Assembly (NCBI GenBank): GCA_964019335.1
Contig: OZ025706.1
Location: forward strand, 434,001 to 498,000
Length of the DNA stretch: 64,000 nt
Source of the DNA: Diplonema japonicum
Lineage: Eukaryota; Protista; Euglenozoa: Diplonemea
Reading direction: 5' to 3'
The translations under genes were made by a program, and so were the position numbers. The notes beneath the pieces were generated by a model. It did not search any database. It was given only the letters and a program-made list of their open reading frames with translations, and was not told the DNA's origin. Below, piece by piece: positions 3,854 to 16,565 of this stretch (positions within the stretch are counted from its first letter, which is position 1; the number at the start of each line of letters is the position of its first letter).

Positions 3854-4314
3854 CCTGCCATCAGGCCATCGCGAGCAGGGCACCTCAAAAGAAACATAAT
3901 TCTTTATGACAAAATGTTTTTGTTGTTCGCTTTTAAAAAGCTGCGAAAGCTTTTTGCTCGGCACAAGTTGCATATAAAATCTTTTTTTGAAAGATAAATA
4001 TTTGTAACGAAAGAAAAATGGCAAAACTAGTCGATTTTCATTTTTAGGCTAGGGGGGGAAGCAAAGGTAAAAACCCGCGAATCCCTAACGCGGCACGAAG
4101 ATCACAAGGATTATTATTATCTCAACCACATTGCAATTGAAGTTAAAAGCAAAACATTATATATGAGCGCACCACCTACAAGGTTTGCAAGAAAAAAGAA
4201 AAAGACATAAAGGGAAGAAAAAAGTATGTGCACTGAAATGAAACAAGACAGGCGCAGGGCTTCGACTACAAAGGAGCGGCAAGGAAGCTAGAGGAAGCTG
4301 GTAAGTTGCGCGTT

Positions 4315-8004: not shown

Positions 8005-10059
8005 TCATTGCTGGACATCAAAGGCCAGCCCGTACGTGCTGCAGTGGTTCAAGGAGACAGTTGCTGTTGTGATTTGCGCGACTTGTGACGACCTCGTGTC
8101 AGCAAGACACTTCTTTGGGCACCTAGCCGACTCGACAAGACGGGTGTCCTTGTTGTACTGCAAGAGCGCAGGTGCGGCAGCCTCGCTACAAGGGACAAGA
8201 CGCAGGGGTACGTCCTCTGCACAGTCCTCAGGCGCCACCACGCACATACCTTCCCCGAAGTATGTGTTCACAAAAGACGAAACCTCCCAGCCTGCAGTGG
8301 GGTTCTTACACGTGCCCACACTGAGCAGCTCCACACCGTCCACGTGTATGGTCCCTAGACATCCGTTGGCAGATGTCATGCGGGTGCCCTTTTGCAGGCC
8401 CTCCCTCACGCCAGTGCCGCTCAGCGTGTCTGCAGCCTCGGGCGACGCGCAGCCTGACTCATTGACTCTGCTGTTCTTCACAGAAGCCTCGAAAGCCATG
8501 AGCATGGTTTTCATCTCGTTGCAAACGTCCGCCTGCTCGCTGCACAGGTCATGCGATTCGGTGGGGTCGTTCATCAGATCGAAGAGGAAAGGCCCCGGTT
8601 CGCCTTCCTTGAAGGGTGGCAGCATGGTGGGGCATTGCCCTTTGGCAGGGTTTGCGACGATCTTCCACGTGGCGGTCGGAGTGGAGTTGAGCATCGCCCA
8701 CTGGCCCGACTGCCCGAACCCCAAAGGCTTGGTCCTGTGCGTCTGCAATGGGGTGCTGCCGTTGAGCAGCGGGAGCAGCGACGTGCCGTCAACAACCCAG
8801 TCGCTGGGGTACTGCATTCCAAGGATGTCCAGCACTGTGGGCAGGAAGTCCACCGTTGAGGCTGTGTAGTTGGTTTGCTTGAAGTTGTCCCCGATCAGCG
8901 CGGGCCACCTCACGAATCCTGGCACGCGGATCCCACCTTCGAACAGGGAAGCCTTGCATTGCCGCAACCCGTTCGTTGCGGAGTTCTGGCCCCCATCCCT
9001 GACCCCCATCCCTGTGTCGATGTGCGGTCCATTGTCTGCTGTGAACCACCACATGGTGTTGTCCTCGAGACCTTTAGCTGCTAGCATGTTTTGCAGAACG
9101 CCTATCTGGTGGTCCATCTGGCTCACAGTGCCTAAATAGTTTCCAGCCCAGTTCCCCATCGTGTCATTGTAAGCATGGTACCACTCAGGGAGGGCGTAGT
9201 GCGGCACATGGTTGGTGTGCAACCACAGGAATGCCATCCATGGTGTGTCATCGGTGTTGCGTTGCAAGAACCCGTCGAAGAGGCCGACGATGTACTCGGA
9301 GTCGTCGCCTTCGATCTTCTCTGTCAGGTTGGCAACACAGCTCCTGCCGGTGGTGTTAGGGTCCAAGCAAGCTTGAGGGGGCGGCAGGGTTTCGTAGCGC
9401 CAGTAGTTGGTGCACGTCAATGCATCGTTGACCCACTCACCCGTCCCGGTGATGCATCCTTTACCTTGGTTCTTCCATTCGGGCATGCACCCGCAGTTCG
9501 GCGTGCTAGACTCTGCTGACGCCTCTGTCGCATGCCACTCCTGGAACCCATGGTGCCCTGGGTTGGACGAAGGCCATTTCTTCATTGCGTATGTGGGGCT
9601 CTCGCCTTTCACCCAAAAATCGCCTAAATGCCACTTTCCTGCGAAGAAGGTGTTGTATCCCTTCTCTCTGGCTGCCTGTGCTACTGTGTATGTCGCAGCA
9701 GGAAAAGGCAGTCTGTCGTAGCATGACCATGCAGGTTCCTGCCCGCACCCCTCTGCGTTGTCGATGCACTCCCTCCTCGGCGTTCTTCCACTCAGCACAG
9801 ACGACCTGGTGGGGCTGCACACAGAGCTGCCTGAGTAGAACCTGTCGAACCTCATTGTCCCCTTCTGCCCTGCGACAGCGTCCAAGTTAGGCGTCCTTGG
9901 TGGGTTCACTATGAAATTCGCGCCCCCTGCGGCAGGCTGCAGGTAGTCCTTGTTGTACGAAACGTCGCCCCACCCCATGTCGTCCGCAAGCACAAACAAC
10001 ATGTTCGGCCTCTGCACTGCACACAGAGCGTGCGATATTTGCAATATTAGTAATGCCAT
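8005..10059 (-). CDS. Secreted sulfatase with Cys-rich C-terminal (ricin-B-lectin-like) domain
   Basis: RPNMLFVLADDMGWGD, CSPTR motif, GKWHLG, ADNG, KASLFEGGIRVP. C-terminal GCL/MCV/KCL repeats. Confidence 0.92.
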   Translation of the reverse strand: MALLILQISHALCAVQRPNMLFVLADDMGWGDVSYNKDYLQPAAGGANFIVNPPRTPNLDAVAGQKGTMRFDRFYSGSSVCSPTRSSVLSGRTPRRECIDNAEGCGQEPAWSCYDRLPFPAATYTVAQAAREKGYNTFFAGKWHLGDFWVKGESPTYAMKKWPSSNPGHHGFQEWHATEASAESSTPNCGCMPEWKNQGKGCITGTGEWVNDALTCTNYWRYETLPPPQACLDPNTTGRSCVANLTEKIEGDDSEYIVGLFDGFLQRNTDDTPWMAFLWLHTNHVPHYALPEWYHAYNDTMGNWAGNYLGTVSQMDHQIGVLQNMLAAKGLEDNTMWWFTADNGPHIDTGMGVRDGGQNSATNGLRQCKASLFEGGIRVPGFVRWPALIGDNFKQTNYTASTVDFLPTVLDILGMQYPSDWVVDGTSLLPLLNGSTPLQTHRTKPLGFGQSGQWAMLNSTPTATWKIVANPAKGQCPTMLPPFKEGEPGPFLFDLMNDPTESHDLCSEQADVCNEMKTMLMAFEASVKNSRVNESGCASPEAADTLSGTGVREGLQKGTRMTSANGCLGTIHVDGVELLSVGTCKNPTAGWEVSSFVNTYFGEGMCVVAPEDCAEDVPLRLVPCSEAAAPALLQYNKDTRLVESARCPKKCLADTRSSQVAQITTATVSLNHCSTYGLAFDVQQ

Positions 10060-10161
10060 CCTGTCCTGTTGGAAACTGATCAGCAGCCTTAAGCCAAAGG
10101 AGTGCGCCAAAAAGAAAACCCTTAAAACAGCAACGAAAGATAAAAAGGAGAGAAAACAAGG

Positions 10162-13100
10162 TCACTCACTCAACTCGTCATCTGATGGGATGTTGTCGGG
10201 AACACAAAGCTTCGACAGCTGGGTGTCTACTGTGCTCGGCGCTTTGTGTGTGTTTGCACTCGTGGCGCTGAAGAAGTCATGTGTGCCTCGTTTGGAAAAT
10301 CGTTTTGATCGTTTCCTGAACTTGTTGAGCAGCTGCATGCCATAGTGGTTTTGCTTCAGAATGGACTCGCCTATCAAAGCGATGCGTGCAACCCGTTCAT
10401 TACGGGGCTGTGCCTCTGTCGTGTATTCAGAAATCACCTCGATCCTCTCTCTTGCGGTTTGGTAAAACGGCTGCAGGCAAACAGGGAACGACTGCAAAGA
10501 CCTAAAGGCATCACAAGGTAGCATGTACACCTCGCTGTGAACAAGGATCTCTACAGTGGCCACTTGCCCGACGCACCCGAAAATGAGGTTTGTCTCCCCC
10601 CAGTAGGACCCGCCCTCAAGCCACTCCACCACCACTGGTTCTGGATACACTTTCTCCCCAGCTTGCACCTTTTCCCAATATTCCACTCCGTGAGATTGTT
10701 CGGATAAATGTGCCACGGCACAACCGTTCTGAAAGAAGTAGACACCAGGCACCTCTCCATAGCTGTCCAGCTGTCCTCTCTTCTGCAGAAGCACTTCGCC
10801 TCTGCATAGAAATACAGGGCGCATAGCGCTTACCACATAGGCAGCGAACTCTGGATCGTTGGTTAACTGCAGTTCGCTGAACTTCGAAACGATGTTTAGG
10901 TTTGCGTAATACTCAAGCTCCTTGCCCAGCTGCAGAGGGAGCTCGGAGGATAAAAAGTTGTACTGCCCTTGGTAGACCTGCGCAGTTCTCTCATATCGTA
11001 TCCTAAGGAAGTCTATGCATTCGTCAACCACATTTTCGCCGAAGGCCGAGGCCTCCTGCTTTTTGTGGAGCTTGACATACTCAGAGTATGCAAGGAGGGT
11101 GTCGATTTTGCTCTGGTAGACCAGTTCATTAGAGCCCAAGATGATCAACAGCTGCTGCATATACGCGATAGCGGTGGCGAATAACATGATCCCGAAGCAC
11201 GCCGTGAAGAGGCAGATGGCCGTCTCTGCGATGGTCTGCGGGTAAGCGGTGCCAAACCCCGAGAAGCTCCGGCACGCCCAGTAGAAAGCATAAAGTGCTT
11301 GGTGGAAGGTGTTAGAGTCGCTGAAGCCTTTTGCACCGGTGTACCGGTCGGTGTCACGGTCGTCTTGCTGGTTGACTACAAGCAACTGCCACAAGCACCC
11401 TATCCAGAACAAGATGCAGCACAGCATGAGCGTAAGAACCACGAAAATACCCACCACTTCACTCCATCCGAGGATGTCGTTCACTTGCTCGATCAGCGAC
11501 TTAACCTCATATATTGCCACCAGTCTGTTGAGCCGCATGGAATGCAGCAACGAAGCCTTCTTAAACACCGAGAACCACACGAGCTCATGAGGTATCACAG
11601 ACACCACGTCCTTCACGAAGTCTGTTTCCAAGTAGTTTTGTTTGATGCGTGCCTTGTTCGTGACAAGGATGCCATGCTCTACGAAGGGCATGCTGAACCT
11701 GTGGACAATGTTCATGTAGAAGGTCAAGTCGCACAAGTAGTCGAAGCACAGCCACATCAGCAGTGAGAAGTCGAAGGAGTCAGTAGGAAGGAAGACAGCT
11801 TTGTAAGGGGTCACAAACAACAAGTAGAACAGGGCGGAGAGACGCACAACGAGAAACATGCAGTATAATTGCGGGTGGGTAAGCCTGAAGAGCTCTGCTT
11901 CTTGGTCACCTTCCTCCACTGTTTCACCATTAATGGTCATGGACGGCCTCTTCTCCGTAACTATCGCTTCTTGCTTTGCAAACTCTGCAGCGGCTGCCTG
12001 GTTGAAATTTCCCCATAAGTGCTTCTGTACAGTCGGTCGGTCATCAGGTAGCTTTCCTAGCAGGACTTGTTCCATGCTCGTGCATTGCTCAAGGTTGGTG
12101 ATGAAAGCTTCTTCGGTTTTGTCCTTCTTCTTCTTCTTGAACAGATCCTGCATTTCCCCGTCGAAGACGGCACCAGTGGACGTCACAGCAACAACAAGGT
12201 GCTCTATCAAAGGGTCTTTGCGCACTCTGGACACGGCTGCGTGCAGCTTTTTAATCCACCTCGCTCCTTCGATGTTTAAGTGTGCGGACTTCTTCTTCTG
12301 CATCATGGCGTTGTTCACGATGTCTTGCAGGACATTCTCCGCTATAACCCAGTCTTCGTAGGACACGGACCGCAACGCATCTGAGTACGCAGGATGCGGG
12401 GGGCGTTCGATGCATAGCTGTGCAAGGCCGTTGCGCAGCTTGATGTCGCCGCTTGGGAACGGTAGCACGGCCTCGAGGCAGAGCATCATCCAGACACGGT
12501 TGCTGTCCGTCGCGAAGGCTCCTTCTGCTACCACCAGCATGTCCTCAGCAAGGGCCATCCCAGCCAGCGACTCGGCAACGCACCGAACACTTCCCATCAC
12601 AGCATGCACAGACCCCCCGTTCCATTGAAGGATGCCATTCTCAACCATCCCTGAGGCCAATCCTATGCCGGTATCCTTGCAAGACAGCCGGATGGCACAC
12701 GACGTGCTCTGAACCATGTTGTCGCGCTCATCGCCCTCCCACCGTGCCACCAGTCTGATCCCTGAACCCCCTTCAGGGATGCCGCCCTCTTCAACAACTG
12801 TTCTGTGGAAGTTCTTCACTATCGCCTTGTAGTCCGTCTCCCGTGCGCACATGGCCCTCGGCCGCTGCATCACCAGGTATGTGGTTATCACATCAGTAAT
12901 GGTGTCCTCTTGGTGCTGTCTTGTGACGGCTGCACCAAACTCGCTGTTGACAGGGACAGCCATTACTGAGATGACATCGGCCACACGTCCTCGTTCCTTG
13001 ACGCGATGGTACATGTCCTGGGCCATTCTGTCGGTAGGGTTCTTCATTACGAAGTCATGTAACATCGACAGGCCCTGTTTCTTGTCGGTTTCATGCAGGG

Positions 13101-15090
13101 CCCACGCATCGGTCAGACTATCCCGCTTGTCGTTAGTGTGCAACTTCTCAACCAACGTGTAGAGCACAGCAGTCGTTGTGTCTGGGGGGATGATGTACTC
13201 AGTCACCGGGCGGAGGGCAAAGGTGTCCTTCGCCATCCATCCTTGTACTGTGTGGGCCACAAGGTTGTTGGTGTGATAGAGCTCGCATGCGCTGCACAAT
13301 GTCGTCGCACGCTGCACAGGACTGCCGACAATGCAACGTACCCTGAAACCATCAGAGCCCACAGTGCCTGCCTGCACGGGGCCCTGGTCAGCCCCCATGC
13401 AGACTGTGAAGTTCAAAGTTGCAGAGAGTCGTGCTGCTTCGTTGGCACGCGACATGATCAGCATAATGGACCTGCACACCCGTAGCGATAGAAAATTAGG
13501 GTTGCCCATCGCACCGAAGGAGACAAGCATCCCCTCCCCACGCACAGCCTCCATGGTGCCAGTGGTGACTTTCATGTCTTCTGTCACTCCCAACACCCAC
13601 TCACGGAGTACTGCGTGCGTCACATCAGGATCGGTACTGTTCCAAGCCCCCCTGGCGTAAATAACCCCTGCAGACCGTACATGCCTGATGCCTATCGTAC
13701 CTAACGACTTTACGAATGACACCTTCGAGCGGATCGGGTCTAGCGGGGTCGGCAGGAGGTTAGGCAAAGGGAATGATTCTTCGCTGGAACGACTTGCCCC
13801 GCATTGCAACTCTGACTGCACAAGCCCAGACATCACGGCGTCAGCAGTCCAGTCGAAGGCAGGTACCTCCAGCTCATCCATGACACTCCTTGGGAGGAAT
13901 GAATGCAGACATTTGATGTTCTCCAGCAGCTTTGCGAAACTTTCCCACATCAGAATCAGCTCTGAAAGGATCATGCCCTCCGGCGGCTCAACGTCGTACT
14001 TCAGGACAGCTGCTTCTTCCATGCATCGGGAGGTTGCCTTGATCCGCGAGCTGATGTTCATGCTGACACATGCGCCCAGCGTTGCGAGCACCACAAAGCT
14101 GCAGACTATGAGTACGATGAGGTTCTTGAGCTTCGTGAACAGCTTCCCAGACAAGTCAGATTCTGGAATAATAACTAACGCCGTCATCTGCAGTCCGTTG
14201 TAGTCGGCAATGAACCTAACACCGATAAGGAGGTCGTCGTGTTGCACCACCCTGTCCTTCTGGGGCGCAATCAAGCTAACTATGTCTTGCTGGGACAGTC
14301 TGTTCACTAGGTGGTGCTGAAACTCAGACACTGTTTTAAAAGACAACTCCGAAGTGTGCTGGTGGTGCACTGACTCGTTCCAGGAAACCGCTATCACCTG
14401 TTGCGACGCCTGCTCTACAAGGAAGCCCACTCCAGAGGAAGAGTACTTCAGGTTCCTTAGAAACACGGAAAGGGAATCAGTGGTCACGTCCGCTGCCAGT
14501 ACGCCCCCATCCTCCAGTTTGATGGAAGCCGTGATACCGACTTTGCTTCCATCGCTATACTTGTAGGGTGCTGTCCAGGAACAGTTTGGGGATGCTGCTA
14601 AGTACCAAGGACGCGTCGAAGGGAGGAAGCCAGCGAGGGTCGCGACAGGTGCTGCTTCTGCCAAAGTGCTGAGGTTGAGAGGGATGCTTGTTAGAGATGG
14701 CAAGGTAGCGTTGCGCACGTGCCACATTGGGTGTGCTCCTTGAGAACTCTCCACGCCGTAGAAGCTGACCCCATCCCACGTGAGCTGCGAGTACACGATC
14801 TCTGCGCTAGTGGCTGCCATGTCGACAAGTGTGACCATCAGTTCCACTTGTGCATCGTGCCTTCTGCGTGACACGTGCCTCGCGGCCCCCCGCACCCGTC
14901 CCACAGGCACCGAAAGAAAGCCTTCCACCTTCGCAGCGATGTTCCAGCTGATGCTCTCTGCCAAGTCCTCCGCTACCCCGTCCACAACCTGCAACCCATA
15001 AAGCGTAACAGGCAAAAAGCCTAGTGTGAAGGACGCAACAATGAGTAGGATGAAGAACAAGGGCAGCGAAACCTGGAGTGTCACACGCAT
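10162..15090 (-). CDS. Fusion protein: TM-Cache-TM-HAMP-like, two degenerate class III cyclase-like domains, 6TM CNG/KCNH-type channel, cNMP-binding-like domain
   Basis: RPWY..WTAPY Cache motif; GADQGPVQAGTVG cyclase-like segment; S4 MRLNRL; pore ALYAFYWACRSFSGFGTAYP; CNBD GGSYWGETNL. Confidence 0.8.
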   Translation of the reverse strand: MRVTLQVSLPLFFILLIVASFTLGFLPVTLYGLQVVDGVAEDLAESISWNIAAKVEGFLSVPVGRVRGAARHVSRRRHDAQVELMVTLVDMAATSAEIVYSQLTWDGVSFYGVESSQGAHPMWHVRNATLPSLTSIPLNLSTLAEAAPVATLAGFLPSTRPWYLAASPNCSWTAPYKYSDGSKVGITASIKLEDGGVLAADVTTDSLSVFLRNLKYSSSGVGFLVEQASQQVIAVSWNESVHHQHTSELSFKTVSEFQHHLVNRLSQQDIVSLIAPQKDRVVQHDDLLIGVRFIADYNGLQMTALVIIPESDLSGKLFTKLKNLIVLIVCSFVVLATLGACVSMNISSRIKATSRCMEEAAVLKYDVEPPEGMILSELILMWESFAKLLENIKCLHSFLPRSVMDELEVPAFDWTADAVMSGLVQSELQCGASRSSEESFPLPNLLPTPLDPIRSKVSFVKSLGTIGIRHVRSAGVIYARGAWNSTDPDVTHAVLREWVLGVTEDMKVTTGTMEAVRGEGMLVSFGAMGNPNFLSLRVCRSIMLIMSRANEAARLSATLNFTVCMGADQGPVQAGTVGSDGFRVRCIVGSPVQRATTLCSACELYHTNNLVAHTVQGWMAKDTFALRPVTEYIIPPDTTTAVLYTLVEKLHTNDKRDSLTDAWALHETDKKQGLSMLHDFVMKNPTDRMAQDMYHRVKERGRVADVISVMAVPVNSEFGAAVTRQHQEDTITDVITTYLVMQRPRAMCARETDYKAIVKNFHRTVVEEGGIPEGGSGIRLVARWEGDERDNMVQSTSCAIRLSCKDTGIGLASGMVENGILQWNGGSVHAVMGSVRCVAESLAGMALAEDMLVVAEGAFATDSNRVWMMLCLEAVLPFPSGDIKLRNGLAQLCIERPPHPAYSDALRSVSYEDWVIAENVLQDIVNNAMMQKKKSAHLNIEGARWIKKLHAAVSRVRKDPLIEHLVVAVTSTGAVFDGEMQDLFKKKKKDKTEEAFITNLEQCTSMEQVLLGKLPDDRPTVQKHLWGNFNQAAAAEFAKQEAIVTEKRPSMTINGETVEEGDQEAELFRLTHPQLYCMFLVVRLSALFYLLFVTPYKAVFLPTDSFDFSLLMWLCFDYLCDLTFYMNIVHRFSMPFVEHGILVTNKARIKQNYLETDFVKDVVSVIPHELVWFSVFKKASLLHSMRLNRLVAIYEVKSLIEQVNDILGWSEVVGIFVVLTLMLCCILFWIGCLWQLLVVNQQDDRDTDRYTGAKGFSDSNTFHQALYAFYWACRSFSGFGTAYPQTIAETAICLFTACFGIMLFATAIAYMQQLLIILGSNELVYQSKIDTLLAYSEYVKLHKKQEASAFGENVVDECIDFLRIRYERTAQVYQGQYNFLSSELPLQLGKELEYYANLNIVSKFSELQLTNDPEFAAYVVSAMRPVFLCRGEVLLQKRGQLDSYGEVPGVYFFQNGCAVAHLSEQSHGVEYWEKVQAGEKVYPEPVVVEWLEGGSYWGETNLIFGCVGQVATVEILVHSEVYMLPCDAFRSLQSFPVCLQPFYQTARERIEVISEYTTEAQPRNERVARIALIGESILKQNHYGMQLLNKFRKRSKRFSKRGTHDFFSATSANTHKAPSTVDTQLSKLCVPDNIPSDDELSE

Positions 15091-15171
15091 TACATGTTTT
15101 CCAAGGTAACTGTGGCGTGTGGCTGTTGTCGGTTGTGACTATGTACAATACAAACAATACTCACCTGCTTG

Positions 15172-16134: not shown

Positions 16135-16565
16135 GGCCTACACGTGGCTCATCTTCCTTTTCATCGGCTTGTAGGTGGAAAAAGAAAAAGAAAAAGAAAA
16201 AAAAAACAATAAAAAGGAAAAAGAAAACCACTTTCCCCTTTTTCTCCCTTGCTTTCTGGGTGCTCCATAAATAAATAAAAAAGGCTGGGAATGAGAAAGA
16301 GAGGGAGGGGAACTTAGCAGGGCATGGGTGTGTGAGAATGTATCTTCTCCCTCTCATTTCTCTCTCATTTAAGGGTGGGGAAGAGCAAAGGGAGAAAGGG
16401 GACACAATTCAGGACCGAGGACAAACATGCATCGGCATCAACACCAGAAGATGCTCCCCATCGTTGGGGTCCTATCACTATTTAAATATTGGTTCCTTTT
16501 TTTTTTTCTCGTTTTTCTTTCTCCTTTCTCCCTTTTCTTGAAATATATTGTTCAGTTCTTTTCGT

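Follow-up and report, generated by a model that had tools for sequence, protein, structure and literature searches.

Receptors in which a transmembrane (TM) double-Cache sensor and a HAMP-like region precede a class III nucleotide cyclase occur in bacteria and in Euglenozoa, an intact eukaryotic representative being protein P0002 of Entosiphon; they end after one catalytically competent cyclase domain and, as homodimers, synthesise cAMP or cGMP. The ion channels of the cyclic-nucleotide-binding-domain (CNBD) family include the cyclic-nucleotide-gated (CNG) channels CNGA1-4 and the prokaryotic SthK and LliK, which are opened by cAMP or cGMP via an Arg in the phosphate-binding cassette of the CNBD and possess no N-terminal receptor module. 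They also include the KCNH channels (EAG, ERG and ELK), which are unresponsive to cyclic nucleotides and in which an N-terminal PAS/eag domain regulates gating by docking on the CNBD homologue. Here we describe a gene of the diplonemid Diplonema japonicum in which a receptor of the first kind and a channel of the second follow each other on a single polypeptide. The gene occupies positions 10162-15090, on the reverse strand, of a stretch of 64,000 nucleotides (positions 434,001 to 498,000 of contig OZ025706.1, assembly GCA_964019335.1) referred to below as the window; coordinates are window positions, all parts of the gene lie on the reverse strand, and residue n starts at position 15090-3(n-1). 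From the N-terminus, the parts are a first membrane helix (TM1), an extracellular double-Cache domain, a second helix (TM2), a HAMP-like hairpin, two class III cyclase folds, a disordered linker, the channel helices S1-S6, a C-linker and a CNBD fold.

Residues 1-660 are homologous over their full length to the Cache-cyclase receptors (TM helix, double Cache, TM helix, HAMP-like region, FLPRSV motif, cyclase), but the cyclase domain is catalytically dead, is duplicated in tandem and has an ion channel after it. From S1 to the CNBD the best sequence and fold matches are the CNG channels, SthK and LliK, with which the protein shares a charge-poor S4 and the geometry of C-linker and CNBD; where these channels have the cassette Arg, however, it has Gln, and its selectivity filter is devoid of the Glu of CNG channels. 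The likeness to KCNH channels, of which hERG and EAG are among the sequence and structure matches of the channel half, consists in the CNBD-family pore, in a CNBD homologue without the Arg that contacts the cyclic phosphate, and in the GFG of the filter. Unlike in KCNH channels, the N-terminal module is a transmembrane Cache receptor with two cyclase folds instead of a cytosolic PAS domain, S4 is charge-poor as in CNG channels, and the sequence as a whole is nearer to CNGA.

A six-transmembrane channel-like module on the same chain as a class III cyclase is known from the alveolate adenylyl cyclase alpha of Paramecium, Tetrahymena and Plasmodium (Weber et al. 2004, as cited in PMC3283738), beyond which our literature search found no other natural polypeptide described with this pair of modules. 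In that enzyme the channel is N-terminal with its pore motif after TM6, the cyclase is C-terminal and reported active, and there is neither a Cache sensor nor a C-linker or CNBD (PMC3283738); the Diplonema protein, with the order reversed and the cyclases dead, does not belong to this class of N-terminal channels followed by active C-terminal cyclases. Ionotropic glutamate receptors likewise fuse a bacterial-type extracellular small-molecule domain to a tetrameric P-loop pore, but theirs is an unrelated periplasmic-binding-protein clamshell inserted beside the pore, the pore is inverted and a cytoplasmic transducer is lacking. For pathogenic protozoa, a survey of 2012 with mammalian queries reports no further CNG/HCN homologues (PMC3283738), which fits a family of free-living euglenozoans. 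An initial reading of the letters alone, made without database searches (the sequence-only reading), did not know the architecture from characterised proteins, and a published description of the Cache/two-cyclase/CNBD-channel layout was indeed not found in the literature. Each part is of a known kind; the combination joins a new input, a receptor with pseudo-enzyme, to a channel of the CNBD family.

Results

Two cyclase folds without a catalytic site

The first cyclase-homology domain (residues 465-651; 13138-13698) is catalytically degenerate, matches the canonical cyclase-domain profile with 69 bits and superposes on the cyclases CyaB, CyaC, RhGC and Rv1625c with Z 23-24 and a root-mean-square deviation (rmsd) of 1.9-2.4 over about 180 residues, most closely documented for CyaB (Z 24.1, rmsd 1.9, 182 aligned). 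The second, likewise degenerate and extended by a helical tail (residues ~750-935; 12286-12843), carries the family motif ..RL(I/V)ARW.. and had no Pfam match in a scan of sub-segments. A profile of this fold (~750-917) from eight family members was compared by hhalign with a canonical profile from 49 cyclase domains, whose conserved motifs are FSDIAGFT, DKYIGDAIMAFWGAP and GDxVNLASRL, and matched it at 95.3% (E 2.4e-8, 161 columns). In the model its secondary-structure elements follow the order of those in domain 1, at a per-residue confidence (pLDDT) of 50-90, and its language-model neighbours are Guanylate_cyc clusters (0.89-0.90), which we take as a lead only. The two class III cyclase-like folds of the sequence-only reading are accordingly both present, the first by structure and the second by profile-profile comparison.

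Neither fold retains the residues on which catalysis depends. The position of the first metal-binding Asp is occupied by R480 in fold 1 (manual alignment, the strand being unaligned in the profile), that of the second by E519 in fold 1 and I778 in fold 2; the substrate Lys corresponds to A515 in fold 1 (profile alignment), the transition-state Asn to Q593 and C837, and the transition-state Arg to T597 and S841 in folds 1 and 2, respectively; in fold 2 the positions assigned are those of the second metal Asp, the Asn and the Arg. The motifs RGEG (residues 517-520, with Asp changed to Glu519) and VQRATTL (592-598, with Asn changed to Gln593 and Arg to Thr597), which had been singled out from the letters as lost catalytic hallmarks, are thus placed at catalytic positions, and the loss extends to the second domain. 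The Asn and Lys positions are degenerate in all members of the fused family described below. The catalytic set of two metal Asp, Lys, Asn and Arg is found neither within one domain nor split between the two. A complementary site of the C1/C2 type was considered and is ruled out, as the residues are absent from both domains and what remains is non-complementary; the two domains alike lack both halves of the site, which excludes a single working site shared by the pair, as in mammalian C1/C2 cyclases. Judged by sequence, these are cyclase folds without the residues needed for the synthesis of cAMP or cGMP.

A CNBD-family channel with a changed cassette

The channel core S1-S6 (residues 1066-1319; 11134-11895) is recognised by Pfam as Ion_trans (residues 1088-1312, E 4.9e-10), the only Pfam match of the whole protein, Cache, cyclase and CNBD all remaining below threshold in sub-segments. 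The C-terminal 592 residues match CNGA2 (E 1.9e-20), CNGA3, HCN1, KCNH1/2/5 and AKT1 in sequence, and the model of this half (pLDDT 76) aligns over ~430-450 residues with CNGA1, HCN1, AKT1 and KAT1 at Z 20-21. S1-S6 with a P-loop, C-linker and CNBD fold on one chain define a CNBD-family channel, and S4 is CNG-like in its few charges (R1186, N1188, R1189). The selectivity filter F-S-G-F-G (residues 1276-1280; 11251-11265), assigned by alignment and followed by T-A-Y-P, includes the SGFG noted earlier. Its spacing, G-[YF]-G-x-x-x-P, is that of K-channel-type filters (cf. SVGFG in KCNH); a preceding Thr-Val and the CNG Glu are both missing, so that of the K+-selective signature T-(V/I)-G-(Y/F)-G the GFG and the spacing are retained and the Thr and Val positions are not. 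The designation of the pore as CNG-type therefore stands for its best sequence matches, the CNGA subunits, but not for the filter. FSGFG gives no prediction of selectivity; the pore is most likely K+-permeable or a poorly selective cation pore.

The C-linker and cyclic-nucleotide-binding-homology domain (residues 1319-1555; 10426-11136) superposes on the crystal structure of the SthK C-linker/CNBD over 196/197 residues (Z 21.0, rmsd 2.4) and on the C-linker-CNBD fragments of HCN2 and HCN4 at Z ~20, while Pfam cNMP_binding reaches only E 0.08. Its phosphate-binding cassette (residues 1496-1513; 10552-10605) reads Y-W-G-E1499...G-Q1509-V-A-T-V and contains the segment WGETNL..GQVATV (1497-1513). 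The strict cyclic-nucleotide-gated form G-E...R-(T/S)-A is not present: G1498 and E1499 are retained and the Arg is replaced by Q1509. Loss of this Arg from a CNBD abolishes or greatly weakens the binding of cyclic nucleotides.

The beta-roll of this domain has an insertion of ~22 residues, which was suspected of being an unspliced in-frame intron from a 43-nucleotide intron at this place in a paralog; it contains no GTATG, no A-rich tract and no in-frame GT..AG, and the suspicion was dropped. The channel is flanked by two segments of low confidence, a Lys-rich linker from cyclase domain 2 to S1 (residues ~983-1065; 11896-12144; predicted disordered, pLDDT <50 at 983-1050) and a C-terminal tail (residues 1556-1642; 10165-10425) without Pfam match, which consists of one predicted helix and a basic low-confidence segment (pLDDT <50 from model residue 511).

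A family of fused channels

The fusion is not unique: sequence comparison identifies the gene as a member of a conserved diplonemid family and not a one-off. The genome of D. japonicum (62.5 Mb in 132 contigs searched) encodes two further fused proteins, here called C19 and C7. C19 (1829 amino acids) comprises a Cache-like ectodomain (hhalign 95%, E 3.9e-8), two cyclase folds, a C2 domain, Ion_trans and cNMP_binding; C7 comprises a two-helix anchor, two cyclase folds, the channel and a CNBD. The transcriptome of Namystynia karyoxenos holds at least four fused proteins as complete open reading frames (ORFs) on single Trinity transcript contigs, one of them labelled complete in its record name. 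In two of these (P0021 and P0076) a single anchor helix precedes the core, whereas P0020 (2678 amino acids) and P0128 (2767 amino acids) carry tandem ammonium-transporter (Amt) domains before the pseudo-cyclase pair, channel and CNBD (assigned by a Pfam scan for P0020 and by a precomputed PF00909 tag for P0128), and are possibly ammonium transceptor-channels. Two ortholog fragments, P0001 and P0006, lie on one 274-kb contig of the European Nucleotide Archive and are 38-43% identical to the query. Outside D. japonicum the exhaustive search gave only the Namystynia proteins and these two fragments with the fused core; the suggestion from the letters to look in Euglenozoa fits this distribution. 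A pattern search of metagenomes with the alignment of query and orthologs yielded 216 pattern matches and not one true relative, and a word-indexed homologue search gave no match for residues 1-1050 and three for the channel part.

In a maximum-likelihood tree of the channel part (24 rows), in which 13 free-standing CNBD channels of the same genome and animal CNGA served as comparison, all eight fused sequences stand on one side of a branch with support 100/100, which argues for a single origin of the fused channels. C7 entered the alignment and tree with its first exon only, and the four-repeat proteins P0151 and P0152 were omitted from the tree because their cropping was unreliable. Q1509 and W1497 are invariant in 7/7 aligned sequences of the fused family, and the change from Arg to Gln is also seen in C7 when it is read past its intron. 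By contrast, the Arg is kept (R-T/S-A-T) in at least nine of the aligned CNBD channels that stand free in this genome. The missing Arg, which had been noticed in the query alone, is therefore a fixed trait of the family, tied to the fusion with the cyclases, and not the drift or random decay of a single gene. The filters vary within the family (FSGYG in C19, FAGYG in C7, FSGYS in Namystynia). The same core carries Cache sensors (the query and C19), tandem Amt domains (P0020/P0128) or a plain anchor (C7, P0021), as expected of a generic output consisting of transducer and channel. On the evidence of these sequences, the pseudo-cyclase/channel module has been kept since before the split of Diplonema and Namystynia.

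An apparent frameshift in the CNBD of C7 is due to an intron of 43 nucleotides, G|GTATGG...A-rich...AAAAAG|, at ~3932-3974 on the reverse strand of the C7:307000-316000 segment (L013), just past the codons for ..ADYW; another GTATG comes after the final codons of the 83-residue frame. The two agree with the published description of D. japonicum introns as short and A-rich (PMC12621601).

The genome also contains free-standing receptors of ~870 amino acids with a Cache domain and a single cyclase (L009:2252-4858, L010:3008-5617 and L011:2506-5157, on C78, C41 and C51), in which catalytic Asp, Asn and Arg are likewise missing; pseudo-cyclases joined to Cache domains are hence a wider theme in this genome. 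At least 13 genes encode free-standing CNBD-family channels (L014-L026, on contigs C1, C2, C4, C5, C6, C10, C36, C38, C66, C82, C84 and C89). Most have the canonical cassette Arg, the filters vary between TGYG and AGLS, and several of the proteins begin with an N-terminal region of 300-700 amino acids.

The sensor half

The Cache module had been named from the letters, and fold comparison bears this out. Residues 34-323 (14122-14991) form an extracellular double-Cache sensor of the dCache_1 type, with double PAS-like modules and a long helix, between TM1 (residues 11-29; 15004-15060; hydropathy 2.38; within a long N-terminal model helix, 5-75) and TM2 (residues 324-342; 14065-14121; hydropathy 2.88; in a model helix, 310-361, that runs on from the Cache domain). 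The AlphaFold model of the N-terminal half, based on an alignment of 97 sequences, has a mean pLDDT of 75 and exceeds 90 up to residue 390, the Cache domain included, and residues 34-323 match the ligand-binding domains of PctD, TlpQ and MkcA at Z 21.2-21.5 (rmsd 2.6-3.3, 239-249 aligned). The query itself scores 12.2 bits (E 0.13) against PF02743, below the gathering cut-off of 45; homology is established by the fold and by the HMMER matches, which do carry PF02743. An exhaustive HMMER search of residues 1-1050 against 1.84 billion representative proteins gave 677 matches with E <=0.001. The typical match to the N-terminal half is a bacterial protein of ~700 residues that aligns at 155-407 and 484-650, mostly a Cache-cyclase receptor, and the bacterial matches that were scanned have Pfam dCache_1 and Guanylate_cyc, some also HAMP.

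Near-invariant in the alignment are R160, W162, W172 and Y176, and the pocket positions are F155, R160, W162, Y176 and D201. The amino-acid-binding motif of dCache_1AA domains comprises Y121, R126, W128, Y144 and D173 in PctA numbering (PMC8915833). Mapped through the alignment consensus and not a ligand-bound structure, R160, W162, Y176 and D201 agree with it at 4/5 positions and F155 stands in place of the Tyr. Since the best structural matches of the domain are receptors for amines and quaternary amines, and four of the five motif positions are kept, an amino acid or amine is a reasonable guess for the ligand.

After TM2 the model has a helix-loop-helix (residues ~345-400; 13891-14058), with helices to 361 and at 376-398 and a 14-residue connector, in which E377 is near-invariant; it is followed by a conserved FLPRSV..DE motif that is common to bacterial Cache-cyclases. 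The HAMP-like helix of the sequence-only reading is in this respect seen in the model with a conserved residue, but Pfam finds no HAMP in the sub-segment scan and the comparison with Pfam-defined HAMP segments is weak (hhalign E 3.9e-4, 35%), so that a HAMP identity is weakly indicated by the modelled hairpin.

The locus and the open frame

The gene is one intact frame of 1642 codons and a stop, without internal stop, in which Cache, both cyclase folds and the six-helix channel appear in the order read from the letters. The start codon is plausible, as the very beginning of the protein aligns with residues 2-5 of bacterial Cache receptors. On the same strand lie genes for a sulfatase, a leucine-rich-repeat protein, CDC45 and a glycerate kinase, and the window is nuclear eukaryotic DNA and not that of an endosymbiont. 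Two genes of the sulfatase family (1407-2990 and 8005-10056, both on the reverse strand) are part of this run, one of them directly downstream of the channel gene.

The frame contains a single GTATG, at a site that aligns with homologues (CNG C-linkers), and pyrimidine-rich tracts are confined to the outside of the frame. Compared with a related sequence (95-99% identical), the channel gene has 16 synonymous and 11 non-synonymous differences. Two read runs from relatives at this distance bear an RNA label that is a guess only; contigs from the putative RNA cover 10103-11271 and 12104-12856 patchily and 12979-15035 not at all, and show no joints. Runs identical to the genome are DNA-like, one of them, with an apparent GATC ligation junction, being probably Hi-C.

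Upstream, a gap of only 82 nucleotides (15091-15171, reverse strand) separates the stop of the leucine-rich-repeat gene from the ATG. It holds a GTGAGT...ACATAG element of 26 nucleotides, an A/C-rich tract ending in AG and, immediately 5' of the start, a one-codon upstream ORF (ATG TAA). A pyrimidine tract is absent from it and present in the gaps 16190-16407 and 10151-10162. At the other end, a 49-nucleotide element (10113-10161, reverse strand; GTGAGT...pyrimidine tract...TTTTAAG) begins 4 nucleotides before the stop and overlaps the stop codon (10162-10164). It could be an intron, whose removal would give the protein the end ..DDELRFSFWRTPLA in place of ..DDELSE and so affect no more than the two terminal residues; one contig from a related strain runs through the element colinearly, i.e. 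unspliced.

The 3' half of the spliced leader, CAGTTTCTGTACTTTATTG, occurs at 232 dispersed sites of the genome and at none in the control. Diplonemids and kinetoplastids have this motif in common, and as a sequence match it fits Euglenozoa without discriminating between the two. Sites such as C5:515, C6:1908, C21:1582, C36:2084, C49:1992, C2:1000465 and C5:901218 illustrate its spread; the many that lie within a few kb of contig ends suggest subtelomeric copies of the spliced-leader gene or repeats derived from it.

Discussion

We consider it about an even chance (roughly 0.5) that the gene encodes one subunit of a tetrameric CNBD-family cation channel, onto whose cytoplasmic N-terminus a complete bacterial-type chemoreceptor input has been grafted, and in which the cyclase pair transmits a conformation and not a messenger. 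A small extracellular ligand, most likely an amino acid or amine, would bind the membrane-distal pocket of the Cache domain. The signal would pass the membrane via TM2 and the HAMP-like hairpin and reset the dead cyclase pair, which would act as a mechanical or allosteric transducer onto the gating ring of C-linker and CNBD, comparable to the action of the PAS/eag domain of KCNH channels on a CNBD homologue blind to cyclic nucleotides; cyclic nucleotide would be neither made nor sensed. The predicted topology is self-consistent, with 2 + 6 membrane helices, the N-terminus inside, the Cache domain outside, the parts from HAMP to cyclase fold 2 inside, and C-linker and CNBD in the cytoplasm. That the sensor would gate the pore without cyclic nucleotide is plausible, and a cyclase pair that transmits conformation is the simplest reading because the enzyme residues and the messenger-binding Arg have been lost together while both folds have been kept. 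More tentatively, the family may form a hitherto unrecognised diplonemid class of ligand-gated channels, in which interchangeable sensors gate a CNBD-family pore directly via tandem pseudo-cyclases and a nucleotide-blind CNBD, a second-messenger pathway having collapsed into one allosteric protein.

Several observations weigh against this interpretation, and two of them are its main weaknesses. The linker from cyclase domain 2 to S1 (~80 residues) is predicted to be disordered, which rules out coupling through a rigid connection and calls for a docking interface; and Cache receptors work as dimers while the pore would be a tetramer, a mismatch of stoichiometry. In addition, cyclase domain 2 is modelled at modest confidence, the identity of the hairpin as HAMP is not established, and within the fused group no terminal branch is longer than that of the query (1.53), so that the query may be relaxed or specialised. 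Direct transcript support for the gene was not found, the candidate RNA runs being patchy within 10103-12856 and leaving the sensor half uncovered.

An unlikely alternative is that the pore is gated otherwise, by voltage, lipids or Ca2+, and that the Cache/pseudo-cyclase half serves assembly, targeting (e.g. to the flagellum) or a separate signalling pathway. The long disordered linker would suit it, and so would the Ca2+ or lipid input at which the added C2 domain of C19 hints, as well as C7 and P0021/P0076, which have the cyclase pair and channel without an ectodomain and in which the core consequently works without an external sensor. It has to contend, however, with the recruitment of at least three types of sensor before the same core, which suggests that the core reads the state of the sensor, with the conservation of the Cache pocket residues and with an S4 that has only two or three basic residues. 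We regard it as distinctly improbable that the protein is a self-contained cascade, whose cyclase pair still catalyses by means of non-canonical residues or forms a different nucleotide product that the Gln-type CNBD senses locally, even if a maker and a sensor on one chain would be the obvious rationale for such a fusion. Glu519 could in principle bind metal, P0001 and P0021 retain G-D at this place, cassette Glu1499 and the entire CNBD fold are retained, and Pfam still recognises cNMP_binding in C19, P0021 and P0020; but the transition-state Asn and Arg and the substrate Lys are absent from both domains, Arg480 and Ile778 occupy metal Asp positions of domains 1 and 2 so that neither C1/C2 arrangement is complete, and the Arg for the cyclic phosphate is Gln in every family member.

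Degenerate sites of mammalian adenylyl cyclases and of soluble cyclases bind allosteric ligands such as forskolin and bicarbonate, and in both cyclase domains of the family the fold core and many of the glycines show no variation. The dead pair could on this basis be a cytoplasmic site for ATP, bicarbonate or another metabolite, and the channel an integrator of an internal metabolite with the external Cache signal, but no specific pocket residue can be assigned and we hold this for a slim prospect. Least credible of all, and very improbable, is an artefact of the gene model in which two genes, or an unspliced or decaying gene, are read as one frame. What speaks for it is that the organism has short introns (PMC12621601), one of 43 nucleotides within the CNBD of C7, that the possible RNA is patchy and does not cover the sensor half, and that a GTGAGT...TTTTAAG element overlaps the stop codon. 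A single gene is nevertheless favoured over two, because 1642 stop-free codons hold eight domains in one frame and in functional order, because the same fusion recurs in two paralogs and on single transcript contigs of Namystynia, because the lone GTATG aligns with homologues and pyrimidine-rich tracts lie only outside the frame, and because the differences to the relative are mostly synonymous; the element at the stop codon would alter the last two residues only.

If the interpretation of the gene as a channel with a grafted receptor and a conformation-transmitting cyclase pair is true, a natural cascade of receptor, enzyme and effector would have been turned into a single allosteric machine, cyclase-fold pseudoenzymes would gain a concrete job, and channels of the CNBD family would have a fourth mode of control, after cyclic nucleotides, voltage and PAS docking. 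Should gating prove independent of the sensor, the Arg-to-Gln CNBD and the dead cyclases would still be two partners that lost the same messenger together. The ammonium-transporter versions in Namystynia suggest a link from transceptor to channel, and the modular core could be a scaffold on which chemically gated channels are engineered. Among heterotrophic protists of the sea, diplonemids belong to the most abundant, and to our knowledge almost nothing is known about their chemical sensing. The channel gene provides a directly testable candidate for a chemical sensor of these organisms, and it may represent an undescribed route by which a channel is opened directly by a chemical from outside.

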